Shown here in pieces: positions 3,411-57,290 of a stretch of DNA of 64,000 bases. A program made the translations under genes and the position numbers. The notes beneath the pieces are model-generated. The model saw nothing but the letters and a program-made list of their open reading frames with translations. It searched no databases and had not been told where the DNA came from. Source of the stretch: Neoechinorhynchus agilis (taxonomy: Eukaryota; Animalia; Acanthocephala); NCBI GenBank assembly GCA_051530055.1, contig CM121341.1, forward strand, positions 310,001-374,000, given 5' to 3'. How positions within the stretch are numbered: the stretch's first letter is position 1; each line of letters begins with the position of its first letter.

Positions 3411-3429
3411 TAAGACGTCATTGGCTCGA

Positions 3430-4320: not shown

Positions 4321-4324
4321 TCAA

Positions 4325-5509: not shown

Positions 5510-5541
<32 letters not shown>

Positions 5542-10835: not shown

Positions 10836-10837
10836 TT

Positions 10838-17139: not shown

Positions 17140-17171
<32 letters not shown>

Positions 17172-20363: not shown

Positions 20364-20375
20364 TTTCTCCCCTCC

Positions 20376-28980: not shown

Positions 28981-28982
28981 CC

Positions 28983-30190
28983 AAATAAAAACCGAGATTT
29001 GAAAACGCATTCGTTTACTCACCCTTTGATCTTCGCTTTAATTTTGACGCGCTTTGGAAAAACATTAACAATAAAATAAAAACTCGAGATTTGAAAACGC
29101 ATTCGTGTACTCACTCTTAGTTCTTCACTTTAATTTAGACGCGCTCTTAAGAAACATTACCAATCAAATAAAAACTCGAGATTTGAAAACACATTCGTCT
29201 ACTCACTCCTAGATCTTCGCTTAAATTTAGACGCGCTTTGGAAAAACATTAACAATAAAATAAAAAATCGAGATTTGAAAACGCATTCGTGTACTCATTC
29301 TTACTCCTTCACTTTAATTTAGACGCGCTCTTAAGAAACATTACCAATCAAATAAAAACTCGAGATTTGAAAACACATTCGTCTACTCACTCTTAGATCT
29401 TCGCTTAAATTTAGACGCGCTTTTGGAAAACATTACCAATCAAATAAAAACTCGAGATTTGAAAACGCATTCGAGTGCAGACTCTTAGAGCATTACTTTG
29501 ATTTAGATGCGCTTTTGGAAAACATTATCAATCAAATAAAAACTCGAGATTTGAAAACACATTCGTTTACTCACTCTTAGTGTTTCACTTTAATTTAGAC
29601 GCGCTTTTGGAAGGCATTACCAATTAAATAAAAACTCGAGATTTAAAAACGCCTTCGTGTACTCACGCCTAGTTCTTCGCTTTAATTTAGACGCGCTCTT
29701 GGAAAACATTACCAATCAAATAAGAACTCCAGATTTGAAAACGCATTCGAGTGCTAACTCTTATAGATTCAATTTAATTTATATGGGCTTTTCAAAAACA
29801 CTATCAATCAAATAAAAACTCGAGATTTGAAAACGCATTCGTTTACTCACTCTTAGTGCTTCACTTTAACCTAGACGCGCTTTTGGAAAATATTATCAAT
29901 CAAATAATAACTCGAGATTTGAAAACGCATTGGTGTACCCACTCTTAGTTCTTCGCTTTAATTTAGACGCGCTTATGAAAAATATTATCGATCAAATAAA
30001 AACTCGAGATTTGAAAACGCACTCGTTTACTCACTCTTAGTACTTCACTTTAATTTAGACGAGCTTTTGGAAAATATTATCAATCAAATAAAAACTCGAG
30101 ATTTGGAAACGCATTCGTGTACTCGCTCTTTGATCTTCACTTTAATTTAGAGGAGCTTTTGGAAAACATTATCAATCAAATAAAAACTTT
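28983..30190. repeat. 92-bp tandem array, about 13 copies
   Basis: Unit AAATAAAAACTCGAGATTTGAAAACGCATTCG...TTTAATTTAGACGCGCTTTTGGAAAACATTA recurs every ~92 bp. Confidence 0.95.
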
Positions 30191-30499
30191 TGGTCAATAG
30201 TCACAAAAGTTAAAGATAACTAAATTTGCAAGATTCATTAAAATTGGATAACACCATTAAAATCAGCGCGTCAGATATGCTCAAACTGATATATCATTTT
30301 GTTGCCAATTTTAAGAACCATGGAAATAATTCAGGTATCTTATATGAACTAGAATCATAAAACTTAGTGTCAAAATTTAACACGCAACAAGACGCCGTTA
30401 TTGCAGGTGTATTCAGCATCAAAAGTATATCTAGAAAAGTTAATTTGATCTTAAATTTATTGATGTTTTAATATCACTAATCAAGGTTATAAGTCTCAG

Positions 30500-31372
30500 A
30501 ATTGAACAGCGAATAACTCAAGAACCATATAAGACGATCCTAAGAAAACGTGCAAATTCGTTATTAAGCGTGTTGCATTGCGCAATACAATCGAAAGGGA
30601 ACCGGGTTAATATTCCCGAGCCAGGAAGCGGTTTATGCTTGATCTTTTCAGATGTTCTTCTTGGGCAGATGATGTTCAGCATAAGTGGTGACACTAGCAA
30701 TCCCAGAGAATAACTATACGAGGTCTAGGGAAGAGTTTTCTCTTCTTTGTTAGGAACTTTATCCCTGGAATTAGATCGTCTGTTGATATTGTACACGTTC
30801 CGTAATGCAGCGCGATTCCTGCGATGTATCGAGCGCTTTGTATTGTCCTTGAAAATCTGGTTACGAGAATATTCAGACCGTACCAGTTCGTACGTATTTC
30901 CGCAGCAGGTCTCCAAGGTGAGTAGCCTCTAGTCGACAGGGAAACGTAGGCAAGGGAAGTCGGCAAATTAGATCTGTAACTTCGGAAAAAGGATTGGCTC
31001 TACAAGCTGAGATGGCCGGGCTTTCGCGAGAAGCGGTATGTTGTCGACTATTGGATCTGTCCCAGTTATTTGCTCTTGCGAAAGAGTCGATTTCGAGGAC
31101 GGAACTTGGTGCTGCGTACTGTGGACAGCGATAGTTATGCTCCGCGTTTGTTCGGCGTATCCAAAAGGGCACGCTTGCTTCTTGCGCGGGGAACCGATCA
31201 GCGTTAAACAGCTGGCCTTGAACTGGTATGGACAAGGCTAATCCAACTGTTGAATTAAAACAAAGCATTGCGATAGCTGTAATCGTTGTTGACGCAATGT
31301 GATTTCTACCCAGTGCTCTGAATGTTAAAGTGACGAAATTAATTTAAGCGGGGGTAAACGGTGGACGTAACT
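30500..31372 (+). rRNA. 28S: 28S rRNA internal fragment ending ~20 nt before the R2 site
   Basis: GAAAGGGAACCGGGTTAATATTCCCG, CCGCAGCAGGTCTCCAAGGTGA, GGGAAGTCGGCAAATTAGATC, GTGATTTCTACCCAGTGCTCTGAATG, ends GGTAAACGGTGGACGTAAC. Confidence 0.93.
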
Positions 31373-35499: not shown

Positions 35500-35778
35500 C
35501 CTCTTTTGAAGTAGATAGCTATGTTCCGCGTTTGTTCGGCGTATCCAAACGGGCACGCTCGCCTCTCGCTCGGGGATCCGATCAACGTTAAACTGCTGGC
35601 CTAGAACTGGTATGGACAAGGGGAATTTAACTGTTGAATTAAAACAAAGCATTGCGATAGCTGTAATCGTTGTTGACGCAATGTGATTTCTACCCAGTGC
35701 TCTGAATGTTAAAGTGACGAAATTAATTTAAGCGGGGGTAAACGGTGGACGTAACCATGACTTTTCCAAGTAGCCAAA
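35500..35778 (+). rRNA. 28S: 28S fragment forming the 5' flank of R2 copy E
   Basis: AGAACTGGTATGGACAAGGGGAAT...GGTAAACGGTGGACGTAACCATGACTTTTCCAAGTAGCCAAA. Confidence 0.92.
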
Positions 35779-36009
35779 ATTTAGATGATAGGTCATCAGG
35801 TACACCCTCTTCCACCGGGGGCTTGGCGCTTCTTTTAGATTGTGTCAATCAACAACTAACGCGTTAGAGTTCCATCGTGTCCTTCAGGAATTTATAAAGT
35901 GCCCAGTTTGCAAGCCAGATGTGATATGTACCGGAAAAACTAAGGTGAAGCTGATTAACGATCACATTGTATCATCCCACAAGCAGGTTGTGGAATGGAT
36001 GTGTGGCAT

Positions 36010-38535
36010 ACATAAACACGTTTTATTTAAGAAAAGCACAATCCACACACTTGCCAGCATCTATCTTTGCTGAAGGCGCCTGGATGTCGGATGTTGGGGC
36101 AAGAGAGGTGGGACTTGTCTTTGAAGGAGTTTTAATGTGCGATCGGAAGTTTAGTACAGGAGATGATCGTTTCAGAGTCTTTCATTGTTCTCCGATTATT
36201 AAGGAAAGATTGGGCTTGGAGGAGAAAAGATTTTTGGTAGAGAGTGGTACGAGCGAGGGGGATGAAAAAGGTTTGGGTTACGGGTGTTTACGAGGAAAGA
36301 GTATTTAGAGATAAGGGAAGAAAATTGTGGAGGGCGTCGAAGAAGACGAAGGGCGTTTTTGGAGAAAATCGAGTGGAGGTGGGCGTCGAGGGGAGGGAGT
36401 GAAGTCCGGCAAATTCTCGCCGCTCTCCTGTGGTAGGTTTCGAGGGAATGGAGAGCATTGACGGAAAGGGCGAGGAAAGTTGGGAAACCGTATGTAAGGA
36501 TAGGAGGGATGGCAGAAAGATAAAAGTGGGCAAGGTGTTTAGGGGATACGCCACGACGGCCTTAGAGAGTGTAAATGAAATGTGCTCATCCCATTTAAGG
36601 TTCTCTTGTAAAATCAGGCCCAGTATTCGGAGAGAAGAGGAGCGTTGGATGGGGGAGTGAGAGGCGCGGGGATAAGATTGCGTTTGGAAATGTGGTGGAC
36701 AAGCTCAAAAGATTTGGATAAGTTTAAGGAGAGGTTTAGGGTGGAGAGCGAGGAAATGAGATGGTTGAGCTCGTCGATGGTTGTGGAGAGAAAGAGAGGG
36801 AGATGCGATGGTAATGACTGTGAGGTCATCGGTATAGAGAAAATATTTGGTAGGGGGAGATAGGGGATGAAGGTCATGTAGAAAAATGTCAAAGACGAGA
36901 GGGGAAAGTACGGCGCATTGGGGCACCCCTTCAAATATGGGTAGAGAAGAGGAGCAAGAAGTTCCACATTGAATATATTGTTTGCGGTTGGAGAGGAAAC
37001 AGGAATTCCAAGCGAGTTGCCAGGTTGGGAAGCACATGCTTGGAAGAGAAGGGAGTGATCTACCGACTCAAACGCCCTGGAAATATCTAGTTGCACGAGA
37101 CGGACTGTTGATGCTGGACTGGAATCTTAGCTGCGCACAAGCGTATCGTAGATGCAGAGGAGGGCATCAGAACAAGAGTAATTGGGACGGAAAGCGAATT
37201 GGGAAGGGGAGATGTTTTTGAGGAATAAATGAAGTAGGCGGGTTTTAAAACATTTTTCTAAGATTTTAGAGAAAGGTGAGAGGATAGAGATAGATCGAAA
37301 GGATGTGGGGGAAATCGGTTTATCGTTTTTGGTTGGTGGGACGACACGGGCTTCCTTAAGAGATGATTGGAAAGAGCCCAGTAGAAAGCTATGGTTCGTT
37401 ATGTGCGTTAGAGGATCTATAAGTTCCGGGATGATGAAACGAATGGCCCAATATGGGATAGTCGAATTACTGGAAAATTAGCGGGCAGGCGTTTAACGAT
37501 CTCTAGCATTTCGACAGGGCTTAACTAAGAAAGGGCATTTATGAATGGGCGGGTCAGAAATTGAGAAAGGAGGTTGGGATAATGCATTGGAGGTTTCGGT
37601 AGGACAGAGGCTTTTATTCATGGAGTTAGGGATTGAGAGGATATCGGATTTGGGGAGAGATGCGCGGACGGTGCATCTACCAAGACCAGTGACATTTTTT
37701 ATTTCACGCCACCAGTTTCGATTGGGAACGGTCGAGAGACGAGATGAGAGGAATAATTTGTGGGCTATACGGATGCGTTTTGTCTTTGTGGAGTGGAGGG
37801 GTAAGCAGGATTAAATGACCGGAAAGCTTTGGTGACCTGCATTTGAGGGTTTTTTTAGAAAAGGCGAGAACCATGGAGGGTCGCGGTTCGAGATTCGTAT
37901 TGTTTTGCGGGGAAAGGAGGCCTTAATCGCAGATTCTATTAGAATTAACAAAGAGCCCATTGCAATCGAGAGGTCGGTGCAAACGATCGTAGAGCGGTTT
38001 TGCGTTATAAGAAAATTGACACGTACAGCAAAGGATTGGATATGATGATCACGTTTATCCCAGACAACGCCGGGGTCGGAAAAGGAACCCTTTTCTGAAG
38101 TGATGAGGGGGAGAGAAGGATGGAACAATGGTCAGATGAGGCGATCGGGGGGAGTTTGGTAGTGCACGAGTATTGCCTGATGTTTGAGAGAATTTTATCA
38201 AGGCGGGGGGCGCTTTGGGCTCGGCATTGTTTGCAAGTGTTTATGACTTTAGGTCCTGCGACGACGTTGATACTAACAGATTTGATTGCAATTGTTTACG
38301 ACGTTAGATCTTGTTACGGCGTTGATCGTCTGACAAGGAAAGTATTCGATGATGTGTGACGACGACGAGAGAGAGAACGTTGACGAGAGAACGAACGTTG
38401 AACGTTGACGATTGGCGAGAGAGAGAGAACGTTGAACGTTGACGATTGAGAGAACGATGATGATTGACGAGAGAGAACGTTGTCGAGAGAGAGAACGTTG
38501 AACGAGAGAGAGAACATTGACGAGAGAGAGAACGA
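36010..38535 (-). mobile_element. CR1/L2-like LINE nested in R2 copy E
   Basis: QLDISRAFESVDH, GVPQCAVLSPLVF..YTDDL, PRKTIRISNRDPPWF; CGTTCTCTCTC-repeat 5'UTR at 38360-38535 resembling 31730-31820. Confidence 0.82.
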
Positions 38536-39145
38536 TAGAGTGCATTTTTTCTATTGACCTTCACTACAAGACATGCTCCAGAAAAAATCCGTGAAAGGCA
38601 ACAGCTCTATATGTTGAGGAGACAATCGTAAAGGTGGCCCCTTTAGCAGGAGAAATCGGCTGGGTCATTGCAAACATAGAGCCAGAGGGACCCGTGGTAT
38701 GCCCAGAATGTTACGCCACATTCCACGGGAGTAATCGAACAAAAGTTGTGAAGGACCACCTTATGTACGAACATGGAACAACCTCCGAGTTGTTTCAATG
38801 CCCGGCGTGTTCGGCATACAAGGCAGAAAATTATGCATCAGTGCGTAGCTACATGAACGCCTGCAAGCGGCGGGGAGAAATGGCTTTATCCACGTCTAAA
38901 AACGAAGGAAATGAAAGAAAGGAAAGAAATGAAATAAAGTATTCGTAAGCCGAGCAATCTGTCATCGAGCTGGTTAGCGAGGAGGAATGCGAACCTCCAG
39001 AGTTCCCAACAGAAAAAAGCCCATATTCTGTCCGTTCACTTACCCTTGTAGGAAGCATGGAAGCGCAAGGCCACTTCTTGCCAGAAAATCGTACGCCACA
39101 GTCGAGACGTTGGTGTGAAGGGTGCACCACAATGGCAGACTGTTC

Positions 39146-39296
39146 TGTGACAGGTACTGATGTGGTTGCCATGACGCAACCAATCAATGTTACACACACA
39201 TTGGATAACGGTGTGTTTGGTTGTGTTTGGGCGGGGGTGTGCTGTGTGCAATAAAAAGGTCGTAGATAGTTTGCAGGCATGTCACGAGACGTTACA
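39146..39296 (+). repeat. 5' LTR
   Basis: Differs from 41729-41878 by two substitutions and one indel. Confidence 0.95.
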
Positions 39297-41728
39297 TCTG
39301 GCGACGAGGGTGGGATACCCTTGTTTGTCCAACTCATGCAGCAACAAACGATATTGATGGAAAATATACAAAAGCGCTCCGACGAGTTCATGAAAATAAT
39401 TCGCACGAAATTCGACGGTCAGGCGGCGCTTAGCAGAGAAGCAGACGGAAAATCGAGATCTGGAATATCGATTGTTCCTTTCAGGAGTTTTGAGAAAGGA
39501 GAAGAAAGCTGGACCAATTACCACAAAGAACTAAAGGCCTATTTCTGCTCGGTTGCCGTTTCGGACGAAGAACAAAAAAAGTCACGTATGCTCTCATGGG
39601 TGGGCCCGAGTAGCTTTGATATTATCTCGAAAGCGACACCAACAAGTGTGGAAGAGTTGTCGTACGACGAGGTCGTGAACACATTGGACACTCACAATAG
39701 TGACAAAGTCCACGTGATAACAGCACGATTTCGATTCGTGAACACACGGAGCAGCCAATGGTTGCAATTTTCATGAAAAGGAAATCACCTATGATTCTCA
39801 GGCAATAAAGGAACGGATTCGAGACATGGTCGCAATGTATTCTCCGGACGCGTTTGTGCGTAGAACTGGTCTCTCGGATGGAAATATTGATCTGGACAAA
39901 CTTCTGAGTATAGCTTACAACTTTGAAGAAATGAACGTGGCTCCGACTTTACATATCGAAGCGCCCATCACGAATGTTTGAGAGGAAACGATGGAGAAGG
40001 CGAGCGATACCGTGTCCTGAAAACGAAAAAGCGATTCGTTGCCTTCTCGCCGGATTCCATTTTCACTTCAACCGGCAGTGAAAGCGCAGTTAGAAGAATT
40101 GTGTGATACCGGTGTGTTGGTGAAGGTGGACACAAACGATGATGGAATCGATTGGGCTACCCCGATGGTGATCGTAAGGAAGCCTGCCGGGAAACTGTGA
40201 ATTTGCGCAGATTTCAAGGTTACTATCAATCGATACTTGAGCCCAGAATCGTATCAGATGCCCAGTATCGAAGATATGCTGAATAATATTTCGAACGGTA
40301 AGATATTTTCTAAGCTAGACCTAACAAACGCTTACCTGCAAATCCCAGTAAGTCAATCCTATCAACACTTATTAACAATATCGACGCCGTGGGGATATTT
40401 CCGATACATCAGGTTACCATTCGGCATCTCCAACGCTCCAGCGATTTTTCAGAGTTACATCGATTCCACAATCAAGGACATTAACGGAATCCATGCATAC
40501 ATAGATGACCTGATAATCGTTTCGGATACCGAAGAAGACCATATAAAAAGCTTGAGGCGATTGTTGGAGAGATTTCGTGAAGTTGGACTTACAGTTTCTA
40601 AACAAAAATGCTCGTTTTATACAGATAAGATAGAGTACCTGGGCTTCGTTATAAAGGAAAATTCTATCCGACCATACGAAGAGCGGAAACGAGCCATAAG
40701 AGATGCTCCACGACCAACTACAAAACACAATCTTATATCATGGCACGGGTTGGCAACATACCACTCACGATTTACGCCGCATCTTCAGGACATCTGTAAG
40801 CCTTTACATTATCTAACACGGAAATAGAAGCGATTTGTGTGGACAGAAAAAGAGGAAGATGCGATCCGTAAAGCCAAAGAGATCCTATCAATACCGCAGA
40901 CGCTAGTTCCATATTCACAAGCCAAAGCCCTCGTTTCACCGAAGCAAATTGTTAGCGACAACGGTCCATAATTTATAGCTCCTGCCTTTCGGAAGTTCTG
41001 CATGGACGAATGCATAACACACATCAAGGCAAGTCCGTACCACCGGCAGACAAACGGTTTGGCAAAAAGATTCGTCCAAACATTAAAGGACCGAGTACTG
41101 AAAAGAGGACCGGACCATAGGAATACCAATCTCTGGCGATTCCTGGAAGTCAACCGCAATACACCGCATTCGACCACCGGTAAAAGTCCCTCAGAAGCTA
41201 TAATTCGTCGACGAATACCGACAATTTTCGATATTGGAGGCATGGTCTAAAAAAGTTGGCACGAAGATAGGTCGGACAAATCCAAGGCGCACCACGATCA
41301 AGCTTCCGCGAAGGAAACAAGTTTTGGCATAGGAGTTCCCGTATGGTGAAGGAATATGCAAACTGGAAAATATCAGGAGGCGACAATCGCAAAACGAAAT
41401 GGTCCACTATCCTATGAAGTGGACACCCATATGGGAACGCGTCGAACACATGCAAACAAGATAAGAAAGCGGGAAGAGGCAATCGTAAAGACCGAGCCGA
41501 GAAACCAAGTAGAAAGAACTGCTGAAGAGAAGCATTCGGGGCAAGAAGCAGGGCCAGACGAGAATGAAGAAAGCAAAGAAGCAATCGCCGTAAAAGTAGA
41601 ACAGTAAATTGATGATCAGGAAGTTGAAGCATCTCAAGAATCCAAAGCGCCGATTCTGCGCAGAAGTGTAGGGACGAGAAAACGCCCCACCCTACCGTAT
41701 GATGTCTATTTGCGGAGGGGGTAGAGAA

Positions 41729-41878
41729 TGTGACAGGTACTGATGTGGTTGCCATGACGCAACCAATCGATGTTACACACACATTGGATAACGGTGTGTT
41801 GGTTGTGTTTGGGCGGAGGTGTGCTGTGTGCAATAAAAAGGTCGTAGATAGTTTGCAGGCATGTCACGAGACGTTACA
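41729..41878 (+). repeat. 3' LTR
   Basis: Follows the PPT and is followed by the TSD. Confidence 0.95.
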
Positions 41879-42295
41879 TGTTCAATCGAGTCTACTGTTT
41901 TTACAGTGGTCGAGGCGTATGAAAGCGTTGAAGATGTTCTAAACAAGAGTAACCTCCATCCAAGATACAGAGGTTTTCTTGAGACGGAGCGAGATATCCT
42001 CCGTAAATCGTTAGGTCCCATTAATGGTGAATTTGTCGATGCGGCGGCTATGCGATATGCTCAGTACTTGCGATGTGGTCGGAGTAACGAAGTGCCTCGA
42101 GTCTCTAACGCGAGAGAAGTAGGGCTTAAGATCATTAAACTGAGGAAAGGCCCGACTCAGGCTCTCTCCGCTATTGCCTACCACGTACTGGGTAATCCTT
42201 CATTGTGGAAGAAGGTAGCTACGAAAGTAACAATGGAGGTTCAAAACAACAAGGAATAATATGCGCAAGTTGCACAGAACGTCTCTGACGCCAAT

Positions 42296-43891
42296 GTGCC
42301 TCTGGAAGTCCACCTTGGAGGTCTTCTAAAGAATAGTGTAGTATCTCCTTTGTTTGTTTTGTTCGCTGCTGCCGCAGCATACTCAAGTGATTTCTCGGTC
42401 CATTCGCCTTTCGAACGACAAGTGCGTCGAATCTTTTGTCCCGGAATTGGAACACACGCTTACAACGTGTGGATCGACGAATCCGGCATCTATCCATGTG
42501 TTAGATGTCGCGGTATTACGAGATACCAAGACCGTGAGCTTAAGAAGAGACGAAATCGTGCCCTGTATTTTGCCAACACCTCGAAGCTTGCAGCTGAGGT
42601 GTTTAAAAATGCAGAGAGGAGAGAATGTCATCTGAATCCGAAAGAAACAGTTGAACATTATCGTCGTTTATTTGAAGGAAACGTCCAACCTGCGAGTCTG
42701 CCAAAAAGTACTGTTGCAAATGAACAGCAGTCTCCAGAGGAACGTTGGCCGGTCATCACAACGGTGGAAGCCGAAGATGCCCTCAAAAGCATCAAGCCTT
42801 CAAGCGCATCGGGTCCGGATAAGATAACGGTTCGAGATGTTCGAGCCTTCGATCCGTTACTTCTGGGTATGACGTTGCTCTTTAACTTCGTCATGCAACA
42901 CGGAGGGCCGCCACAATTGTGGAATGAGTCCAAAACTATCTTGTTGCCCAAATCAAGCGCGTCACCGGAGAAGCTGCAAACTCAGGGCGGTTGGAGACCG
43001 ATTACGATCTCCTCCATTTTGATGCGTGTCTTGCACCGCATCATTCTAAAGCGGCTTCGAAGAGTATGCTTTCTGGACGCTGGACAAACGGCGTTTGACC
43101 CGTCGGCCTGTATGGCTAACCTACTCACTCTTCGGAGTGTTGTTAGAGAAAAGCGGGCAAACAGGAAACCTCTTGCAGTAGCTGTGCTCGACATAAAGAG
43201 TGCCTTCGACACTGTTTCACATGCTGCAATAGAGGAGTCACTTCGTAAAATAGGGTGTCCTCACTATCTGCAAAGATACGTGATGAGCTCTTACTGCGAC
43301 AGCAGTACGAAGATCCGTATGCCCAACGCCAGACCGTCAGACCCTATTAGCTTCCGGAGAGGAGTAAAGCAAGGGGATCCCCTCTCCCCCCTGCTATTCG
43401 CGCTGTGTGTAGACGAGGCACTGCAGGAAGTTCGAAGACTTGATTTAGGTGTTCAGCTTAAAGGGAACGTTCGTCTGTCGCATCTTGTATACGCAGATGA
43501 CGTTCTCCTGATGGCTGATAACTACGATAATCTACAAAAAATGATTGACACACTGCGGGGCAAGCTCAGAGAGAAGGACCTTATACTGAGTGCAGAAAAG
43601 TGTCAGACATATAGGCATGCCTATAGGTGCAACAAAATGATTATCGATAGAGAATCGTCGGTAGAGATCGAAGGGGTGTTGCTGACAGCAATTAAGGAAG
43701 GGGACCCGGTGAAATACCTAGGTGGTACTCCCTGGAAAGAGACCACTCTAGATGAAGGACTGGCGTTGTTAGGCACCCTATTTGAAGCGACAAAACGGGT
43801 ACAACTCTCACCGACTCAGGCCGCCCACCTGCTGAACGACTATGCAGTGCCATCCCTGGTGGCTAGACTCGAAGCCTCCTGGGACATATAG
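42296..43891 (+). pseudogene. R2 copy E reverse transcriptase; reading frame broken by stops at ~42257 and 43889
   Basis: SGPDKI, WRPITISSILMRVLHRI, LDIKSAFDTVSH, GVKQGDPLSPLLF, YADD, KYLG. Confidence 0.92.
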
Positions 43892-43948
43892 TCTACCAAT
43901 CTTAGGCGTATCGACGAGCAGTGGAGGTCAAAGCTGAAGAAGCTCCTT

Positions 43949-44947
43949 ATGCTGCCAAGGAATCTCAGCGAAGGTGCATTCAATCTACCGCTTTCAAAAG
44001 GTGGACTAGGGTTCCGATCTCTTGTCCACGAAGTAGAAACTACGAGGCTCCGAGCCGTGAGAGCGGTCATTGACAAGTTTGGCTGCGCCATTGACCTTCA
44101 CAAAGAGATCGGCCAATTAACGGACTACTTCGGCAAAATGGGTGATAAGCGTGAGCTGCATCAAATCTCTCCAAAGAAAGCCTTTATTGACCATCGCATA
44201 AAAACATGGAGAGAGGCGATAACGCAATCGCAAGGGTTTGAATGTTTCACGAATGGTTTGGTGGATCGCAGTCTGATAAAGTTTCGTTATCGCCAAGACC
44301 GTCACCATTCGTACGTGGAGCATGTTAAACTAAGATTCCAATTGCTGGAGGTCGGTTCTGTTTTGAGCCGAATGGACCATCAGCGCGGTAGAGCATGTAG
44401 GCATTGTACTGCACCGGTTGAATCATGTGCTCACGTACTCAATGGATGTGATTACACTTCTTCCGCAATGACCCGACGCCATGACAAGGTGCAGTCGCGC
44501 CTTGTGTGGACGTTAGCGAAGAGACCTGGAGCGCATTATGAGTGTAGGGAACAGAACCGATTTCATAACGAAAAAGGTGACTTGTTCAAACCCGACCTCA
44601 TTTTGAGCGACAGGAACTCAGGGAAGGTGTATATTGCGGACGTTGCAGTCTACTACGAGACAGGTGAAGACCGCGCGGAAGCCGTCATGAAGGGTAAAGA
44701 GGATAAATACGCATCCATTGTTCCGATAGTTGCGAGAGAACTGAATGTACATGAGCATAAAGTCTCCACTATCGGTCTTGCAGTGGGATCGCGTGGTACT
44801 TATAGCAACTCTTTACTTCGCCGCCTGAAGCTTCTCTCAATAGGTCAGCGAACAGCGCTGAACATGGCTAGAACTGCTGCCGAGCAATCCCTTATGGTTT
44901 TCCATGTTTTTTCGGGCAGACGGTGGTGCCAGAGGCAACAGCTCTGA
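43949..44947 (+). CDS. R2 copy E C-terminal zinc knuckle and restriction-like endonuclease
   Basis: LPLSKGGLG, CRHC..ESCAHVLNGC, RHD, KPDLI..D, K..KY. Confidence 0.92.
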   Translation: MLPRNLSEGAFNLPLSKGGLGFRSLVHEVETTRLRAVRAVIDKFGCAIDLHKEIGQLTDYFGKMGDKRELHQISPKKAFIDHRIKTWREAITQSQGFECFTNGLVDRSLIKFRYRQDRHHSYVEHVKLRFQLLEVGSVLSRMDHQRGRACRHCTAPVESCAHVLNGCDYTSSAMTRRHDKVQSRLVWTLAKRPGAHYECREQNRFHNEKGDLFKPDLILSDRNSGKVYIADVAVYYETGEDRAEAVMKGKEDKYASIVPIVARELNVHEHKVSTIGLAVGSRGTYSNSLLRRLKLLSIGQRTALNMARTAAEQSLMVFHVFSGRRWCQRQQL

Positions 44948-45177
44948 AAACGTGGAGACTGTATGGATAGTTGCTTCCAGTGGAACTGCAACAATGAAGG
45001 GTTCCAAAACGAATAAATGGACAACAGCTAAAACAATTGAAAGGAAAACAACAGAAGGGCACCTTTAATAAAAAGAGGGGTGTATCGACACTTGAAGAAG
45101 TGAAGAAAAAGGAAAGACTTATCGTGAAATTAAGTAACATTATATTGTAACTGTTATTTGCGTAATAAATACGTCTC

Positions 45178-45209
<32 letters not shown>

Positions 45210-45322
45210 TGCATGAATGGATTATTGAGATTCCTACTGTCCCTGTCTGCAGCCTAGCGAAACCACAGTCAAGGGAACGGGCTTGGAGAGTAACAGCGGG
45301 GAAAGAAGACCCTGTTGAGCTT
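45178..45322 (+). rRNA. 28S: 28S segment, +1 to +145 downstream of the R2 site
   Basis: TAGCCAAATGCCTCGTCATCTAATTAGTGACGTGCATGAATGG...GGGGAAAGAAGACCCTGTTGAGCTT. Confidence 0.95.
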
Positions 45323-45405
45323 AGCCTTTTGCATCAACAGCTGCTATAACCACTACAACAACAATAATATACAATGTCGATCCAGATGGGGCCCTTAAGT
45401 GTTCT

Positions 45406-48390
45406 ATGTGCAAAATTGCGGCCATTGGAAAGACAAAATTTCGCTTATTTAACGAACATCTGGCAAAAGTTCACGGAATTACTGGTCTTGTATGGCGGTG
45501 CCCGATATGTACAAAGTATGAACACTGTGAACATCGTAGCATGTCCGTTCATCTGAGAAAGTGCCAATCGAATTATCCTGACAAGTACCGATTTCTACTC
45601 GATGATATATGCAAATCAAGTGTTCACATTAATGTTTTTGCTAGTCAATCGTCCGTGTTGTACATACCCGGCGATGACAAACCAATTGAATGTTTGCTTT
45701 GCGACTACTCTGTGATTGGAACTGGGAAGTTCAATTCGATGGAACATCACTTAACCTCGATTCACAGAGTGACGGACTGCCGATTTCGATGCGGATTGTG
45801 TCTCGCAAATTTTGGAACTCTACCTCAAGTACGTAGTCATTACAATCATTGCCGAACGAATATGGGGAATAGCAGCTCTAATGGTCCTATGGAGTCAAAA
45901 GAAAAGCTCGATGGCACTAGTACTGATATTCATCACTCAATGATTGACAAAGCGGATTACAGTAGCAAGTCAAATGGTGCATCCGATTTTCCTAGCGAGC
46001 CAAAAACAAATTATAACGACGCGAGCGATATCGAATCTGTTTATTCTACTCAAACACGAGATGAGAATTTATGTCTCAATAATCCGAATCGTAAAAGTCG
46101 GAACAGCGTTCTGCAAAATGAATACAGAACCGATGCAAGTGCTACAGCTACATTCGTTAATGGGCATATTGAATTACCTACCTCGTCGTTCCGGCCTACA
46201 AACGATCACACCGAACGAAATGAATTGCCTACCTCAACGCTCCGGTCTACGTACGACCATGTTGAACGGATGGTATTGTGTACCCCTTCGCAACGTCGTG
46301 CGGACGACCATGTTATAAATATCGAATTGTCTACCTCATCACACCAGCCTACGTATGATTACGTTGAGCAAACGGATAGGTCTACCTCATATAACCGGCC
46401 TTCAACTGCAGAATATTCTCAGAATGTAAACGATATCACAGATAAATTGGAAACGCATCATGGTATCAACCCTAATGATTTAAATGATAATGCCCAAAAC
46501 TGTTCTCAAATCGAAGTCGCCTACCCTCTTGAATCGGAAAAGCCCCTCGAATGTCCAATTTGTTCTTTGAATGTTGTTGGAAAGACAAGACACCGGATTT
46601 TTCTTAATCATTTGGAAAAAGTTCACAATAAGTTATCAGTCTCCTGGATATGCCAACTTTGTAAATCCTTTAGTAGTGAAGTTCCGGGGAGTGTCGGCTC
46701 TCATTATCGACGGTGCAAGGCTGTAAAGGTTAAAGAGTACAAGGAATTACTAGCGAGCAGTACAAAAGATGCTGTTCTTAAGAAAACAAATTCCACAGTT
46801 GAAATCGTGTATACCGGAAACGAATTTCCAGCACTTTGTTCGCTCTGCCAGATTTGCTATCTTGGTCAAGGACAGTGGAACGAGATCGAGCGGCACATTC
46901 GTTCTGATCATGGCAGCACGCGCGTTTTGTTTCTATGTGGCAATTGCAAAGTTGAATCCTCGGAAAACTCATTTAGCGCCCGATCGCATCTCACGCAATG
47001 CACGAAAAGGCTTCGGTTTTCAGAGAATACACAACATGCTAAAAAGGAAGATTCTCGTACACCTATTGACGAAAACTCATTTGCCTCGGATCACCTGCGA
47101 AACAACCTCAATATTAACTTCCCTATCACCGAACCAGACATCCCTACTTCTACAATAGCTGTGAACGAGGTTGAATATGGTACGTGCACTACCGCGAGTC
47201 AAATCAGTGTACCCCGCGAAGTACTATACGAAGCATGCAACAACGAACATCAGCCCTTATCTTCATTCGACGGTCTTGACAATATACAGGAAACCATCAC
47301 AAACTATCTTCCCTCGGAACCTCTGTGCGCAAGTCACGAGCCTCTTCAAGCTGTGGAAAAGGACAACGAGGAACTTCAGCATACACGCGCAATCTCAGAA
47401 GCTCCAGTTTCTACCCCACAGTTTTTTTTCGAAACCCCTGGGGACTGTCCTAGTAACAACAACCTTCACGCGCGACGGTCTATTGAACACTTTTCAACAA
47501 CAGAAGGACTGAGTGCAGGAGAATTCTCGACGCAAGAAGCCTTCGAATTCTTCAGCCAACCGCTTCAAAGACAAGATCTTCATCCTCGGTATCGGGAATT
47601 TCTAGAACAGGCGAGCTCAGCAATGCGTGAAATTGACGGACCTATTTCAAAAGACGTAATCGACGATATGTTAAATCGATACGTCACGTATCTTAAATGC
47701 GGACGGATTTCTAACAAAGAGGCTGCGCCGATGTCAATCGCACGATACCGTGGTCTCAAAATCATTAAGCTCAGAAAGTCCTCAACGATGACTATGGCTA
47801 CTGTCGCATTCCATGTTTTTAAAAATCCAACAATGTGGCGGAAAGTACAATCCACAATGGCCAACGAAATGAACTATCAGAGCATGCTATTTGAGCGAAT
47901 CGCAACAAACGTCGATGATGCAAACGCCAGTCTTTTTGACTTGATGAGCGCACTCAAACAAAATCGTGAGTTATCATCTGAGTTTATACTGTATAGTGCA
48001 GCTTCAGCGTTCAAATGCGACTTTGTTGTACACAAGCCAACATCTGACAAACCAAAACGAATACGCTCCCACCTGGTTACTAACAAATCTTATAATGTCT
48101 GGATAGACGAATCGGGCTGCTATCCATGCGAGAGGTCACGAGCGCTCAATGTTCAGCAATCCCGCCAATTAACTCGCCGACGATACCGCGCGATGTATTT
48201 CAATAATACGAGTCGACTTGCGAACTTAGTATTTAATGACAATACTGCCAATCAGATGAATACTTTCGCAAAACTTTTCAAGGCAACTCGGAACTTGCTG
48301 CTACCCCAAATGACTATAGAGAATCAAGTAACGTGCCCAAATCGGAACTATGGCCAGCGGCTACGGTCGAAGAAATCAGAGCAGCAATAA
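45406..48390 (+). CDS. R2 copy F N-terminal region: 2 x (CCHH-CCHC-CCHH-CCHC) fingers, S/T-rich linkers, OTU-like domain, pre-RT region
   Basis: Finger cassettes at ~45400-45852 and ~46552-47001; the frame is open from 45325 with no upstream ATG. Confidence 0.85.
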   Translation: MCKIAAIGKTKFRLFNEHLAKVHGITGLVWRCPICTKYEHCEHRSMSVHLRKCQSNYPDKYRFLLDDICKSSVHINVFASQSSVLYIPGDDKPIECLLCDYSVIGTGKFNSMEHHLTSIHRVTDCRFRCGLCLANFGTLPQVRSHYNHCRTNMGNSSSNGPMESKEKLDGTSTDIHHSMIDKADYSSKSNGASDFPSEPKTNYNDASDIESVYSTQTRDENLCLNNPNRKSRNSVLQNEYRTDASATATFVNGHIELPTSSFRPTNDHTERNELPTSTLRSTYDHVERMVLCTPSQRRADDHVINIELSTSSHQPTYDYVEQTDRSTSYNRPSTAEYSQNVNDITDKLETHHGINPNDLNDNAQNCSQIEVAYPLESEKPLECPICSLNVVGKTRHRIFLNHLEKVHNKLSVSWICQLCKSFSSEVPGSVGSHYRRCKAVKVKEYKELLASSTKDAVLKKTNSTVEIVYTGNEFPALCSLCQICYLGQGQWNEIERHIRSDHGSTRVLFLCGNCKVESSENSFSARSHLTQCTKRLRFSENTQHAKKEDSRTPIDENSFASDHLRNNLNINFPITEPDIPTSTIAVNEVEYGTCTTASQISVPREVLYEACNNEHQPLSSFDGLDNIQETITNYLPSEPLCASHEPLQAVEKDNEELQHTRAISEAPVSTPQFFFETPGDCPSNNNLHARRSIEHFSTTEGLSAGEFSTQEAFEFFSQPLQRQDLHPRYREFLEQASSAMREIDGPISKDVIDDMLNRYVTYLKCGRISNKEAAPMSIARYRGLKIIKLRKSSTMTMATVAFHVFKNPTMWRKVQSTMANEMNYQSMLFERIATNVDDANASLFDLMSALKQNRELSSEFILYSAASAFKCDFVVHKPTSDKPKRIRSHLVTNKSYNVWIDESGCYPCERSRALNVQQSRQLTRRRYRAMYFNNTSRLANLVFNDNTANQMNTFAKLFKATRNLLLPQMTIENQVTCPNRNYGQRLRSKKSEQQ

Positions 48391-48887
48391 AGGGTATAAA
48401 GTCGAACAGCGCATTGGGTCCAGATAAAGTATCTATTCGAGAAATTCTCGCGTTCGACAGAGATCTTATTGGATTGACGACCTTGATAAATTCAATCATC
48501 AGTGTTGGAATACCACCAACTGAGTTGCTCGAGTATAAGACAATTCTTCTGCCCAAAAATGGTAAAGATAGCACAGCCCTAAAATCAGTCGTAAATTGGA
48601 GGCCAATAACAATCTCCTCAGTTATTTTGAGGATCTAACACCGTCTTATTTTAGCAAGGCTTCGAAAGGAAATGAAACTACATAGCAGTCAAACAGCGTT
48701 CGAAAGCGCCGCCTGCAATTCTAATCTCCTCCTACTAAGGACGCTCATTAAGCAAAAGCGACAAGATAAGAAACCCCTCGCACTGGCCGTCCTGGACATC
48801 AAATCAGCATTTGACACGGTTAGTCACAAAACCATAAGCTAAGCGCTAATCGAACATGGTTGTCCACAATACTTACGGCAGTATCTG

Positions 48888-50543
48888 ATGGACGTGTTCT
48901 CGTCTTCACATACCCGGCTCCATCTTCCCAACTCAAGACCATCAGAACCTATCCACTTTCGTCGAGGAGTGAAACAAGGTGACCCACTGTCGCCGTTCAT
49001 CTTTGCTTTGTGCATCGATAAAGCGCTACAAAAAGTCAGCGATTTAGGCCTCGGGACCTCAATAAGAACCTGCCGTTTAAGTCAGCTGGTGTACGCGGAC
49101 GACATCCTACTAACGTCTGACAGTACCGACGACCTTCAAATTATGCTAGATTGTATCAACACGGAGCTGAACGATATTGGCCTATCGCTCTCCGCCGGAA
49201 AATGCCGAACGTACAATCACACATTCAAAAACAGCAAATTAGAAATCAATACTCGGCCAAAAGTACAGATAAAAGAACAACTAATTGAGATAATAGTCGA
49301 CGGTGACCCTGTTACGTACTTAGGCGGAACACCTTGGAAAGAGACAGACATGCAGCTTGTTACAAATGAATTGGATAAGCTCTTCAAGTGCACTAAAGAT
49401 GCAGGATTGAGCCCGACACAAGCTGCACACCTCATAAACGATTACGGGCTTCCGCGCCTTGTTTCGCGAATTCAAGCCGCTCATGATATATCGATTACAA
49501 CGCTCGACGCGATAGAACAGCAGTGGAGAACAAAACTAAAGAAACTTCTATATCTTCCCCTTTCGTTAAACGACGGAGTAATTTTCCTTCCCCTGAGTAA
49601 AGGCGGACTTGGATTCAATTCAATAAAACAATCCGTCATGGCATCGAGAATGAAGAGCTTCCGTGAGGCCAAATTGAGAATCCCCGAACTGGAGCTATTG
49701 GACAAAAATTTTGGAAAAGTTATAAAATACTGCACGGAAATCGGGGCTGCAAACCTAAGCGAAAGGAAGTGCGACATCCACAAAGCGCATGAGATTGACA
49801 ATATCTTAAAATGGCGAAAAGCGGTGACCCAATCACAAGGGATCGAGTGCTTCACCGCTGGCACAATTGATCGAAGTCTCATTTCATTTCGGTACAGAAA
49901 AGATCACCATAAAAATTACACCGAAAAAGTCAAAATGCGACTTCAACTACTAGAGGTTGGAGCGACTTTAGCGAAGTATGACCAAGAAAGAACAAAACGG
50001 TGTCGCCACTGTTCAGCTCCGGTCGAATCACAACTTCATGTCTTAAATGACTGCCCACACAATACGGGCATGATGACAGAACGCCATGATGCCGTTCAAA
50101 AACGTTTCATCTGGGCTCTACAGAAACGAGGAGGCTCTCGGTGGGAACTGCACACCGATAACCGTATCCACGATCCAGGTGGTCAGCTGTACAAACCCGA
50201 CCTTATCATAATAGATAAGCAGAAAAACGAAGCCCTCATTACAGACTTTGCTGTCTATTATGAAACCGATAGGGATCGCCCAGAAGCAGTGATGCAACAC
50301 AAGGAAATAAAGTACGCAACAATCAAAGGAAAGGTAGCTGAGCAACACGCAATCCCGATATATAACGTCAAAACAATAGGCATTGCGGTTGGATCAAGAG
50401 GTTCATACTCTAACGAGCTGCTCAAACGATTGCGAACTTTCGGACTATCATACAAAACAGCGATCAACATGGCAAGAACAGCGCACGACAAGTCGATCAA
50501 ATTGTTTCATACATTCATGGGTCGTCGATGGACGCTGCGATAG
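48888..50543 (+). CDS. R2 copy F RT C-half, zinc knuckle and endonuclease
   Basis: GVKQGDPLSPFIF, YADDILL, YLGG, CRHCSAPVESQLHVLNDC, ERHD, YKPDLII. Confidence 0.92.
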   Translation: MDVFSSSHTRLHLPNSRPSEPIHFRRGVKQGDPLSPFIFALCIDKALQKVSDLGLGTSIRTCRLSQLVYADDILLTSDSTDDLQIMLDCINTELNDIGLSLSAGKCRTYNHTFKNSKLEINTRPKVQIKEQLIEIIVDGDPVTYLGGTPWKETDMQLVTNELDKLFKCTKDAGLSPTQAAHLINDYGLPRLVSRIQAAHDISITTLDAIEQQWRTKLKKLLYLPLSLNDGVIFLPLSKGGLGFNSIKQSVMASRMKSFREAKLRIPELELLDKNFGKVIKYCTEIGAANLSERKCDIHKAHEIDNILKWRKAVTQSQGIECFTAGTIDRSLISFRYRKDHHKNYTEKVKMRLQLLEVGATLAKYDQERTKRCRHCSAPVESQLHVLNDCPHNTGMMTERHDAVQKRFIWALQKRGGSRWELHTDNRIHDPGGQLYKPDLIIIDKQKNEALITDFAVYYETDRDRPEAVMQHKEIKYATIKGKVAEQHAIPIYNVKTIGIAVGSRGSYSNELLKRLRTFGLSYKTAINMARTAHDKSIKLFHTFMGRRWTLR

Positions 50544-50632
50544 CTGAATTCCAAAGACCAATAGAAAAGATTAACATTGCAAACATACAGAAAAACGATT
50601 GAAAACGAATACGAACGGAAGATATTATCTAA

Positions 50633-51062
50633 ACTATTGTAAAACTAAGTTTAAGACAAAGATTCCCAGGACACAAAGAAACTATTGAAACTAAAGAAAG
50701 CTTATCAGTTTACCCCCATCCGCCGGGTACGAAGCGCTTCTTCGCTTTAGATGGCGATCTTCCAAACAATCAACCAACTGTTTCAACTGCTGATTCGACT
50801 TATTTTTTCACCCAAAAGACAGAAAAGTCGAGTGTTAACCCCACATCGACCGGAAGCGAAGCGCATTTTTCAGATGACGCTTTTCCCGATGATATGGAAG
50901 CCGAACCGCGTTTGAGTGTGACAATAGCAATAACATCATCACATTTTTCAACTTCTGATCGCCCAAACTTGTCCGATGAACTAACTTCGCCGGTGCAAAG
51001 CGGTCAAAGTGGATTTATACAGAAACTTACTAGCAAACCGCAAGAAGGACGTCTTACTTGAG
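50633..51062 (+). mobile_element. Probable 5' region of another R2-family copy (H), head-to-tail behind copy F
   Basis: VYPHPPGTKRFFALD matches the 5' motif in copies B, D and E; open S/T-rich frame to ~51062. Confidence 0.5.
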
Positions 51063-51094
51063 CAAACAATTTTAATCGTTCAGATCGTGTATTG

Positions 51095-51520
51095 CACGTT
51101 CATTGAGGCTCCTAGGTACCATCACAGGTCCTCGGTACAAAGGTTAAAACAAACCATCAGCTCCAAAATCGCTCAATTCATCAGCGAACAAAACAGAGCG
51201 ATGCGCGGAATGTACAAGCAGCAATAAGAAACAGACGGCGATTTGCAATGTACAAAAAACGGAAGAAATATAGTCCGTGAAATTATTTGGCGCACGTTTA
51301 AATTTTAATCTTCATTTTTTAATCGAAATAATTTGTGACATGCTCGAAGTCTTGAAATAATCATGGATTTTATTCTTTTTTAAGGTATTCCATGAAAAAT
51401 ATTCATTATTGAATTAAAGTGCAGTTTTAAGTTTCTCCGAATGAAAATTTATAATCGATTTGTAAAGCTGGCAGCATATAAAATATGTTTTCAGCCAGAT
51501 GGAACGATTGGTGAAAAAGG
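51095..51520 (+). repeat. Third copy of an unclassified dispersed repeat (also at 5738-6240 and 16530-16943)
   Basis: CACGTTCATTGAGGCTCC...GAAATTATTTGGCGCACGTTTAAATTTTAATC is shared. Confidence 0.85.
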
Positions 51521-51819
51521 ACTTAGTTTCAAAAAACTTGCAAGCTTACTTTGCAGCGGAGGATGACAAACGGACGCCTTATCTTAAAAAGGTTCACTTA
51601 ATCCCGGAGTAAGAATGCAATTGCTCGCTCTCCTTAATTCGAATACAGAAATCAGCTCCTTGAAAAAGATGCCCAACTCGAAGGACCTCCTACCCAATAG
51701 ACATTTTCGAACGTAAATCGGAAGGCCTATTTTTTCTGATTCCGCCGATCAATCTTCTCCTTGACACATGCTTTAAATTTGGTCGTGGCGCCTGGCAAAT
51801 CAAATGCTTGAAATTCTTT

Positions 51820-55320: not shown

Positions 55321-55344
55321 TCGAGTCCGATCATCGTAAAAGGT

Positions 55345-55490
55345 GCTTCACTTTAATTTAGACGCGCTTTTGGAAAACATTATCAATCAAATAATAACTC
55401 GAGATTTGAAAACGCATTCGTGTACTCGCTCTTAGTGCTTCGCTTTAATTTAGACGCGCTATTATAAAACATTATCAATACAATAAAAAC
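55345..55490. repeat. About 1.5 copies of the 92-bp unit
   Basis: CTTCACTTTAATTTAGACGCGCTTTTGGAAAACATTATCAATCAAATAATAACTCGAGATTTGAAAACGC. Confidence 0.9.
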
Positions 55491-56099
55491 TAATCAAGTG
55501 CTCTGAAATCGCCCCTCAATCTCAAATAGTCCTTCCGATCAAACGTCAACAAAATTCGATAACATTATTGAAAGCACCGCATCAGAAATACCCAAAAAAC
55601 CTTATTTGGTCTTACCAGCTTAATCCTTATTATTACTATTTGATTCTTGTGTCTTTTATGAAGTTCAACAGGTAAAGAAAAAAAGATGAACGTAGAAACA
55701 AAAAACAGTGTATGCACGTGTATTTAGCGTTAAAAGTTGATAGAGAAAAAGTTATTTAATTATAAATTATTTGATGTTTTGATATCAATAATCACGGTTG
55801 TTTGCCAAACAAACAACCGTTATTATCAATATCAAAACCAGCAATTAATTTGTAGTTAATAAACCTTTCCTTGATCAACATTTAATGCTGATTTAACCCT
55901 CATAGAAAGGGTTTTGTCGCTATGGTCATCTTTCTTTTAGTTTAATTATTGACGTTCATAAAAACATCAGAAATAAATAATTTAAGCGATTAAGCATGTT
56001 TGACCTGGTATGCTTTTTAACGTATATCCGGTGCCGTGATTGCACCGATGTTCTCAAATTTTGTTGACGACTTTTTACGAATCAAACAAATGCGATTTG

Positions 56100-57290
56100 C
56101 GACGTCGCGTTATCAAAACGTCCAAAAAAAGATCGCATTATGATTCTCCGTCTACTGTCCATTGAATGTTGCTGTGCTTTTAATTCCGTACGTGGGCGAA
56201 CTTTTCCGGTTCTGTGATTTCATCGAGTAAGATAAAAGTGCCATCTACGTTTCTCGACCGGAACTTCACACCAGGTAGGCTTGAAACGTTCCTAGCCTCC
56301 CATTCGCGCATGAACAATTCGGTTAGAACTGGGGCAAGTGGACTCCCCATGGACAGTCCATCTACTTGATCATAGCTCTCGCCTTCGAAGTTTGACATCA
56401 GCAAAAATCATTCTATATTCTGCACATGCGAGCGCCTTCAATCTCCCTGTGAACACCACACCTGATGACACGGTGTGCTCATCCGGAGGCACTAAGCTTC
56501 TTAACATGGTAGCAAATATCAAGCTGTTTACGTATCATATGCAGAATGCGATGCAATAATTGGCCGAGCCTTTAGTGGGGATTTATGTACTTTTGCCAAT
56601 AAGTACATGTTAGGTGTAAGTCCGTTGTTGGAACGATGTTTTTTGTATATTTGTTCGTCTATACTTCCATGCTTCTTTAGTGCAAGTACATATTGGTCGA
56701 ACATATTTTCTCGTTTTGTAGTGGGGCATATATTATTAGATCGAAACTCTGGAACCGATAAGATATGCGCGGCAATTCTATGGTAGTGTTCTTCATCTTA
56801 ATTATGATGGTGAACTGAAGGAAAAAATTATGAATATATTAATCAGAATTTTCGACCAATGCGTTGGTCTTCTTCAGTACAGTTAGTGTAAAACTTACAA
56901 ACAATTATTGAAGAAGACCAATGCATTGGTCGAAAATTCTGATTAATATATTTATAATTTTTTCCTTCAGTTCACCATCATAATTAATTCCTAAATGAAT
57001 ATCTACACAATGTTCTTCATCTACAATACAGAAACCTCTGCCTTTGTCCAACTTCATGATACGTATCTCCTCAATTCGATTAAGATTATTCATCGCTAAG
57101 ATCAGTCGTTGGGGCAAGTTAGTACGTTTAATTCTGTTTCCTTTATGTAGCAATGCTTCTACTTTCCATAATGGAATTGTGATTCCGGTAAATTTGGCCT
57201 TGGATATCATCTTCTCCATTTCTAGGGTTAATCCCATGTTGTTGAGTTTGCTACGAATAAAATAAATTCGATTTGCGACACGAGCAGACT
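56100..57290 (-). mobile_element. Second Penelope-like element, decayed and rearranged with a fold-back; partial repeat at 58290-58790
   Basis: YDQVDGLSMGSPLAP..RNVDG (56180-56404) and IMKLDKGRGF (56905-57237). Confidence 0.75.

Follow-up and report, generated by a model that had tools for sequence, protein, structure and literature searches.

Ribosomal DNA and R2-type elements in the window

The window analysed here is a 64,000-nt stretch of the Neoechinorhynchus agilis genome (contig CM121341.1, positions 310,001 to 374,000). Its first part is an incomplete rDNA unit on the minus strand, and the remainder is occupied, on both strands, by R2-type elements, transposons of other kinds and short pieces of 28S. 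The features of main concern are listed in Table 1. On the plus strand they form a head-to-tail arrangement in which an upstream stretch of 28S is followed by element E, a 145-nt piece of 28S, element F and the 5' part of element G. A second Neoechinorhynchus agilis locus, L001, contains a complete rDNA unit whose 18S and 28S are 97–98% identical to those of the window; its R2-type copies are referred to as #0, #1 and #2.

Table 1. Features of the 64,000-nt window. Coordinates are window positions; 28S positions are counted from the R2 site, and a slash in the text marks a junction or cleavage point. The rightmost column gives the basis of the assignment or a remark.
Feature	Position	Strand	Basis or remark
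rDNA unit: 18S, 5.8S and first 920 nt of 28S	1–3631	-	
Inverted duplicate of C2 3' end plus 28S +1..+36	5389–5545	+	part of inverted repeat with 17293–16706
Second stack: decayed 28S upstream, C1, C2, 28S +1..+36, X2	15747–20210	-	
Decayed 28S upstream of C1	~20210–20116	-	
C1, F-like, first element of minus-strand stack		-	
C2, last 45 codons and 3' UTR only	17446–17172	-	
28S +1..+36 (TAGCC...) between C2 and X2	17171–17136	-	
28S upstream flank of stack, ~-257..-1, ending ...GACTTTTCCAAG	35514–35770	+	Rfam LSU model 2157–2279
TAGCC at E 5' junction (TAGCCAAA counting the next three A)	35771–35775	+	Rfam alignment extends through GUAGCCAAA
Element E, R2-type by sequence, full-length 5' end	35776–45177	+	conserved N-terminal block; CCHC and KPD..D motifs
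RT fragment of unrelated non-LTR element, nested in E 5' part	36614–37096	-	RVT_1, E = 8e-6
Deleted LTR retrotransposon nested in E	39146–41879	+	rve_3, E = 1.5e-5, integrase remnant
28S +1..+145 spacer	45178–45322	+	direct reading, Rfam, probe identity
TAGCC pentamer at spacer/F joint	45322–45326	+	direct reading; AGCC 0.0023 per site
TTTTGCAT, eight bases, origin uncertain	45327–45334	+	F homology to relatives begins later
Element F, R2-type by sequence, 5'-truncated and probably 3'-truncated pseudogene	45323–50670 (3' limit approximate)	+	ORFs, domain and motif matches
Element G, 5' part of another R2-type copy	50670–51094	+	conserved 5' block ~50690–50760

Element E and the 28S piece that follows it

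Element E occupies the canonical R2 site as a full-length insertion. On its 5' side the 28S gene reads through to -1, and a TAGCC(AAA) repeat (35771–35778) leads into a 5' block that is conserved among several copies. The upstream flank is 94% identical to the 28S fragment at window positions 31130–31371 and 89% identical to L001 28S. On the 3' side, direct reading shows E closing with ...AATAAATACGTCTC and 28S beginning at the next base with TAGCCAAATGCC..., so that AATAAATACGTCTC/TAGCC is an exact R2 3' junction. The sequence of E proper comes to about 4.2 kb and is split by two nested transposons, a non-LTR insert spanning about 36.1–38.6 kb (limits approximate) and an LTR insert whose 152-nt LTRs are 98% identical and flanked by GTTC. 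The RT/endonuclease frame (41885–44947) carries in-frame stops at 42257 and 43889. Position 41885 was considered as a 5' truncation point of E and rejected, as it is the edge of the nested LTR element. Rfam gave no match to an HDV-like ribozyme at the E 5' end, and RNAalifold predicted only a 4-bp hairpin in the conserved 5' block, which also codes for a peptide motif.

The 28S piece behind E closes with ...CCCTGTTGAGCTT (also read as ...GTTGAGCTT) at 45322. The Rfam model LSU_rRNA_eukarya aligns the whole piece to model positions 2280–2424 with near-maximal posterior probability (123 bits, E = 2.9e-31), and the alignment falls apart right past GAGCUU. Identity is 88% to a generic 28S probe and 96% to one Neoechinorhynchus agilis 28S copy, and only 1 of the 145 positions differs from a consensus of five Neoechinorhynchus agilis copies. 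Directly after 45322 comes AGCCTTTTGCATCAACAGC, with the result that TAGCC reappears at the joint, its T being 28S +145. Given an empirical background of 0.0023 AGCC per site in this window, the recurrence is unlikely to be chance, a statement that holds for one pre-specified site and allows for some post-hoc selection. Downstream, 28S does not resume: probes for 28S +146..+750 found zero matches anywhere in the 64,000-nt window, and shuffle tests gave no significant 28S similarity 3' of the F stop codon. An earlier sequence-only reading of the window had claimed that a second R2-like element starts 145 nt past the R2 site, that TAGCC recurs where it starts and that no 28S follows it, and these three observations are borne out.

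Two motifs in the spacer, GACGTGC and ATTATTGAG, were examined as signs of CpG decay in a pseudogene and rejected as such, being present in all five 28S copies including the complete L001 unit. All 28S copies seen (window 45205–45230; L001 1028–1052, 13771–13795 and 18618–18642) read GACGTGCATG and GGATTATTGAG. Eukaryotes almost universally have GACGCGCATG and GGATTAACGAG at those 28S positions; either the variants are genuine acanthocephalan 28S, or else all of the sampled copies are pseudogenes.

Elements F and G

Element F is a pseudogene: a single frameshift and two in-frame stops disrupt it. Its first open frame (45325–48390) contains eight zinc-finger-like motifs, the frameshift lies within 48258–48351, and the RT/endonuclease frame (48243–50543) is interrupted at 48636 and 48840. 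The conserved 5' block, which codes for ..SPPPGTRASS.. and is found in E, C1, B, G and L001 #1, is missing from F, and homology between F and its relatives starts only at CAACAGCTG, at 45335. F is therefore 5'-truncated by roughly 40–140 nt, and since it lacks the block, its 5' junction says nothing about target specificity. At the other end the F 3' UTR has no AATAAA(T) and runs into the 5' part of element G; alignment of this 3' UTR with related copies could not define a true 3' end. G adjoins it with no detectable 28S between the two. A hidden 28S remnant at this joint was considered and rejected, as local alignments were no better than shuffles.

The eight motifs of the F N-terminus (45325–47000) have CCHH or CCHC spacing and form a tandem duplication of a four-finger block (amino acids 1–150 vs. 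373–514, 31% identical); L001 #1 has four finger-like motifs. Described R2 clades have one to three fingers. No Pfam zinc-finger or Myb model was significant for the N-terminal regions that contain these motifs (four per block, eight in F).

Relationship to R2 elements

Judged by their sequences, E and F are R2-type elements. Both contain an RVT_1 domain (1.1e-36 for element E; 2.7e-16 for element F, where a single ORF requires reading through the frameshift and two stops) and, at the motif level, CRHC..H...C and KPD..D. In a protein comparison with PDB entries the best matches were R2 proteins: R2Tg and other R2 proteins reached 1e-48 with F and 3e-77 with L001 #2, R2Bm gave 6e-11 to 7e-32, and LINE-1 ORF2 was far weaker. 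Both E and F are nearer to avian R2Tg than to Bombyx R2. The 28S 3' junction ...AAGG/TAGCC is present for E, C2/X1 and L001 #0, #1 and #2, with the 3' flank of F being G instead. In all five intact 3' ends AATAAA(T/C) lies 8–10 nt ahead of the junction, and a poly(A) tail is absent (intact ends were read at window positions 45177, 5509 and 17172, and at L001 positions 1001, 13744 and 18591).

E and F share only about 49% identity across the RT/endonuclease region and 38% in the part before it, and both are 40–50% identical to other copies in the window and L001. Among the long copies in the window, C1 is closest to F (about 55% at the amino acid level). C1 and B are preceded by a decayed yet recognisable 28S -1, and L001 #1 likewise has 28S -1. 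A database search with the F RT/endonuclease region returned matches of at most 28% identity and no close copies, and a search with the F N-terminal frame returned a single relative, a Neoechinorhynchus agilis hypothetical protein from L001. The rDNA units within L001 are 94–98% identical (982–3113 vs. 18573–20712; 3897–4985 vs. 21807–22898), and a difference of 2–6% between neighbouring units indicates that concerted evolution is weak in this array. The locus documents many deeply diverged R2-type lineages (40–50% protein identity) together in one acanthocephalan genome whose rDNA units are not homogenised. We found no description of R2 in acanthocephalans in the literature searched.

Similar stacks on the minus strand and at L001

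The E-F-G arrangement has parallels. On the minus strand of the window, decayed 28S is followed by C1, the remnant of C2, 28S +1..+36 and X2, which is 5'-truncated and begins 3.3 kb from the element start. The sequence ACGCCACAGTC past this 36-nt spacer was considered as further 28S and rejected, since it is element sequence homologous to E 39090–39100. In L001, #1 is followed by 28S +1..+97, by #2 and then by 28S that restarts at +1 and continues through the end of the gene. As this is the sole case with a surviving downstream flank, the 28S +1 behind #2 is what places a downstream element at the normal R2 site.

There are five head-to-tail joints in all (E to F, F to G, C1 to C2, C2 to X2, and L001 #1 to #2), each known from one copy; the region of the stack is old and mosaic. 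Relative to its own 3' end, the left partner breaks off at about +145, below 0, -35, +36 and +97, respectively, and truncation of the right partners ranges from 0 to 3.3 kb. Target-primed reverse transcription (TPRT) characteristically leaves near-complete 3' ends and varied 5' truncation, and the position of the left breaks near 3' ends together with the varied truncation on the right accordingly points to reverse transcription, not random deletion. The two joints without a 28S stub (C1 to C2 and F to G) have left partners that lack the terminal AATAAA(T), and the joints with 36 and 97 nt lack TAGCC.

The three spacers carry fewer changes from consensus than contiguous 28S copies do (1/276 vs. 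10/290 nt; Fisher p = 0.011), and the E upstream flank is more diverged than the E spacer (7/122 vs. 1/145; p = 0.025), both being comparisons over few sites against a consensus of five copies.

Origin of the stack

We consider it very likely that E, the 145-nt 28S piece, F and G are a head-to-tail stack of R2-type elements built by TPRT at one canonical R2 site (...AAG/TAGCC...) in a non-homogenised, decaying acanthocephalan rDNA copy, and that F defines no new site. How the 28S piece came to lie between E and F is less clear, and we favour, tentatively, an entry of E into an R2 site already occupied by F, with 145 nt of read-through 28S copied along with it. R2 RNA is a co-transcript with 28S. 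A 5'-truncated F would have occupied the site first, preceded by the TAGCC of a 5-bp target duplication. The E ribonucleoprotein, reading 28S upstream of the nick like other R2 proteins, would then have nicked the same position again. With only TAGCC and F downstream of this nick, the 28S tail of the E/28S co-transcript could not have annealed for a precise start, and reverse transcription would have begun at the RNA 3' end, 145 nt into the read-through, with the terminal U pairing. A renewed top-strand cut after TAGCC would have left the pentamer on both sides of E and its tail. One rule might serve for the other joints as well: if the 3' end of the newcomer RNA can lie anywhere from inside the 3' UTR to +145, tails of about -35, below 0, +36, +97 and +145 would be produced.

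Several observations lead us to favour this account. TAGCC brackets E plus spacer (35771–35775 and 45322–45326) in sequence where AGCC is as rare as given above, 28S +1 abuts the last base of E without a gap, as in a 3' transduction, and the 5-bp bracketing lends the read-through copy modest support. Tail lengths grade from positive to negative values, and a duplication could not leave a negative tail. The spacers carry fewer changes than contiguous 28S, and the E spacer fewer than the E upstream flank, as expected if such pieces were copied from transcripts of conserved units. Finally, R2 proteins recognise rDNA upstream of the nick (PMC11204384). Some points weigh against it. F would have to be the older element, and E is not visibly younger: E has about 4–5 disabling changes plus the two nested transposons in 4.2 kb, F has 3 in 5.3 kb, and the difference is not significant, but a copy may already be defective when it inserts. 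At the E 5' end, the AAA behind TAGCC also fits an 8-bp duplication of intact 28S, in which case the target of E still had its downstream 28S, a situation that favours a long duplication or template jumps (see below). The 36- and 97-nt joints, where TAGCC is lacking, are compatible with the read-through account and give it no support, and the literature yielded no demonstration, for any R2 enzyme, that an occupied R2 site is nicked again. The sequence-only reading had included this possibility (F at the normal site with a regenerated TAGCC, E in front of it with read-through 28S) as the last of three models; it is the one that we prefer, with the unexplained eight bases TTTTGCAT and the apparent age of E counting against it.

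Another of the three models, a target duplication of about 145 bp made by F, is unlikely but not without precedent. A truncated F would have inserted at the normal site with its cDNA joined to a top-strand break 145 bp downstream; 28S +1..+145 would thereby have been duplicated and a full R2 site regenerated upstream, into which E inserted later. Acanthocephalans are close relatives of rotifers. R9 of bdelloid rotifers has a 126-bp duplication (PMC5035012, ref. 22), engineered R2 insertions showed variable rDNA join positions (PMC11204384), and tandem R1 arrays form via insertion into a 5' duplication (PMC2718515). L001 matches the predicted end structure exactly, down to the 28S +1 that follows its downstream element, the 36- and 97-nt joints show microhomologies, and TAGCCAAA at the E 5' end fits a target with intact downstream 28S. 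A duplication cannot, however, yield the joints C1 to C2 and F to G, where no stub is present and the left partner is 3'-truncated, it makes TAGCC at the F joint a 0.2% coincidence, and it predicts a spacer as diverged as the E upstream flank, contrary to what was observed (p = 0.025). It also requires three such events among the four truncated copies with readable 28S 5' junctions, and the 3' flank of F is not 28S. A single event with template jumps, which we regard as quite unlikely, would account for the stub-less joints: reverse transcription primed at an empty R2 site would have copied G RNA, then F RNA and then an E/28S co-transcript ending at +145, finishing at the E 5' end. In vitro, the R2 reverse transcriptase passes from one RNA end to another, and jumps to U12 snRNA and tRNA have been found in vivo at R2 5' junctions (PMC3414825, PMC12203849). 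One activity would thus explain stubs and stub-less joints alike, as well as the full-length upstream-most members with normal 5' junctions (E, C1 and L001 #1) as opposed to the truncated inner ones; clean spacers and an E that is not younger than F would also fit, and mosaic copies are common here (X1, X2-M, and the internally deleted C1 and #1). Against it, each of the two stacks would call for two jumps and a cDNA exceeding 10 kb that draws on three lineages only 40–50% identical; moreover, TAGCC at the joint is left unexplained, and the E/spacer boundary shows no sign of extra non-templated runs.

Explanations other than reverse transcription at the R2 site fare worse. Deletion, non-homologous repair or unequal exchange between neighbouring R2-occupied units, or a join made by the assembler, could have removed the stretch from +146 of the E unit up to the start of F. 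Rearrangements abound in the window: X2 breaks off at codon 268, with 28S -42..-1 and B coming next, a 588-nt inverted repeat is near-perfect, and a 28S/element junction has been amplified in tandem. In Drosophila, R2 activity is associated with large rDNA deletions (cited in PMC3414825). A rearrangement or misassembly is nevertheless very unlikely, as three independent left breakpoints fall within 145 nt of 3' ends (p ~4e-6 for three random breakpoints in a 9.3-kb unit), the right breakpoint coincides exactly with the R2 nick position (TAGCC), and the same architecture recurs in the otherwise complete L001 rDNA unit. The remaining model of the sequence-only reading, that F uses a new site at +145 (GAGCTT/GACTC), we regard as highly improbable. 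The 5' flank of F is indeed 28S +145, its eight-finger N-terminus is unusual, and the specificity shifts of R8 and R9 are known from the R2 superclade (PMC5035012). In R2-type elements, however, it is the 3' junction that marks the primed nick and so defines the target, the 5' junction being variable, especially in truncated copies (PMC2718515). F is a single, dead, 5'-truncated copy, which makes its 5' flank uninformative, and its own 3' junction is missing. Its relatives C1, B and L001 #1 occupy the R2 site, all 3' junctions that can be read are /TAGCC, comparable spacers measure 36 and 97 nt, and the downstream element of L001 is followed by 28S +1. A new lineage would be expected to show several copies with a 3' junction at +146 and full-length 5' ends at +145, and what we found is one 5'-truncated copy with a non-28S 3' flank. 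The locus is a natural experiment on R2 target use, and it fails as evidence for a new target site. The statement in the sequence-only reading that any of its three models would be mechanistically notable was too strong.

Should E have entered an F-occupied site as we favour, the stacks would be a natural record of the R2 enzyme at a target that lacks the downstream half-site: nicking would go ahead regardless, with reverse transcription then starting from the end of a read-through RNA. This would bear on R2 target choice and processing, which are relevant to gene-insertion tools, and on the build-up of insertions in dead rDNA copies. The broader proposition, that the R2-type enzymes of this acanthocephalan routinely re-nick occupied R2 sites, so that stacks of several lineages grow and 28S read-through of differing length is copied, is one that we hold more loosely still. 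If true, it would be in vivo evidence that the upstream 28S half-site suffices for target choice and that R2 can transduce 3' flanking sequence.

Comparison with known systems

A close likeness is to 5'-junction variants of Drosophila R2 (Stage and Eickbush, 2009; Eickbush and Eickbush, 2012), in which 28S +1..+N likewise precedes aberrant or truncated copies, with variable N. Here N extends up to 145, the upstream site is occupied by another lineage, stub-less joints with 3'-truncated partners occur beside stubs, and the host is an acanthocephalan. Tandem R1 arrays are also head-to-tail stacks formed by repeated insertion before a resident copy, and arise by insertion into a 14-bp duplication ahead of the resident R1 (PMC2718515). 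The R1 spacer, being a duplication, is constant, whereas spacers here range from below 0 to 145 nt and separate lineages that are 40–50% identical. The R9 elements of bdelloid rotifers resemble the present case in belonging to the R2 superclade, in coming from a related phylum and in having a long 28S duplication on the 5' side; by their description they are set apart by a 28S site of their own and a fixed duplication of 126 bp, in contrast to the R2-site 3' junctions and variable spacers seen here. Instead of the same long duplication at a non-R2 site, as in R9, we observed spacers of 36, 97 and 145 nt, and 0–8 bp for the full-length E and #1. Only R8 and R9 are listed as R2-superclade lineages with changed targets, and some fish R2 families have shifted 5' boundaries (PMC5035012).

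As regards the copied 28S, LINE-1 3' transduction and in vitro R2 TPRT with RNA that includes downstream 28S are alike in that donor flank is copied from beyond the element end. In the usual R2 reaction, by contrast, the downstream 28S anneals and is not added; adding it would need a target without that sequence, for example an occupied site. The template jumps to U12 snRNA and tRNA seen in vivo (PMC3414825) similarly join foreign RNA-derived sequence to an R2 5' end, with the difference that the acceptor here would be another R2/28S co-transcript, yielding whole extra elements. The stacks more likely have an ordinary explanation, as a further and more elaborate instance of known R2 junction variation, and they are not R9-like.

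Other features of the window and L001

L001 #2 still has an intact ORF of 1332 codons. The ORFs of L001 #1 (10001–10080) and of B (15650–15540, minus strand) are in frame with an ATG inside 28S, located 16 nt upstream of the R2 site (ATGACTTTCCC...), and the NCBI gene model P0032 begins there. This hints at a translation start within the 28S-derived leader of the co-transcript.

The 588-nt inverted repeat (5389–5975 and 17293–16706) has 99.7–100% identity in surroundings that are 50–80% alike, and holds an R2-type 3' end, 28S +1..+36, the start of X2 and part of a module that we call M. It may have arisen recently by gene conversion, or by inverted duplication, or be an artefact of assembly. 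Module M itself (about 440–650 nt) occurs at 5739–6387, 51095–51614 and 16942–16503 (minus strand) and at L001 13968–14444, in copies that are 76–97% identical. It is always fused to R2-type fragments, either after an E-like piece of codons 11–49, after one of the fingers of G or before half a finger, which points to mosaic elements produced by template switching or recombination.

A third 28S fragment (30499–31371) halts 17 nt upstream of the R2 site (GTAAC/) and is followed by unrelated sequence (TGGCCTGGAACACAGG...); the joint at 31371/31372 could be an insertion at another 28S position, or a rearrangement. Just upstream of this fragment lies an array of a 92-nt unit with at least 13 copies (28895–30298), and a lone copy of the unit is found at 55343–55491. 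The junction between 28S -35..-1 and a 5'-truncated element has been amplified to about four tandem copies of about 140 nt each (28219–28917). A second array has a 205-nt unit (57310–59734), and L001 has spacer repeats at 2400–3800. Sub-threshold matches to plant microRNA families at 10836–10967 and 56798–56987 coincide with short near-perfect inverted repeats and are probably MITE-like hairpins, not microRNA genes.
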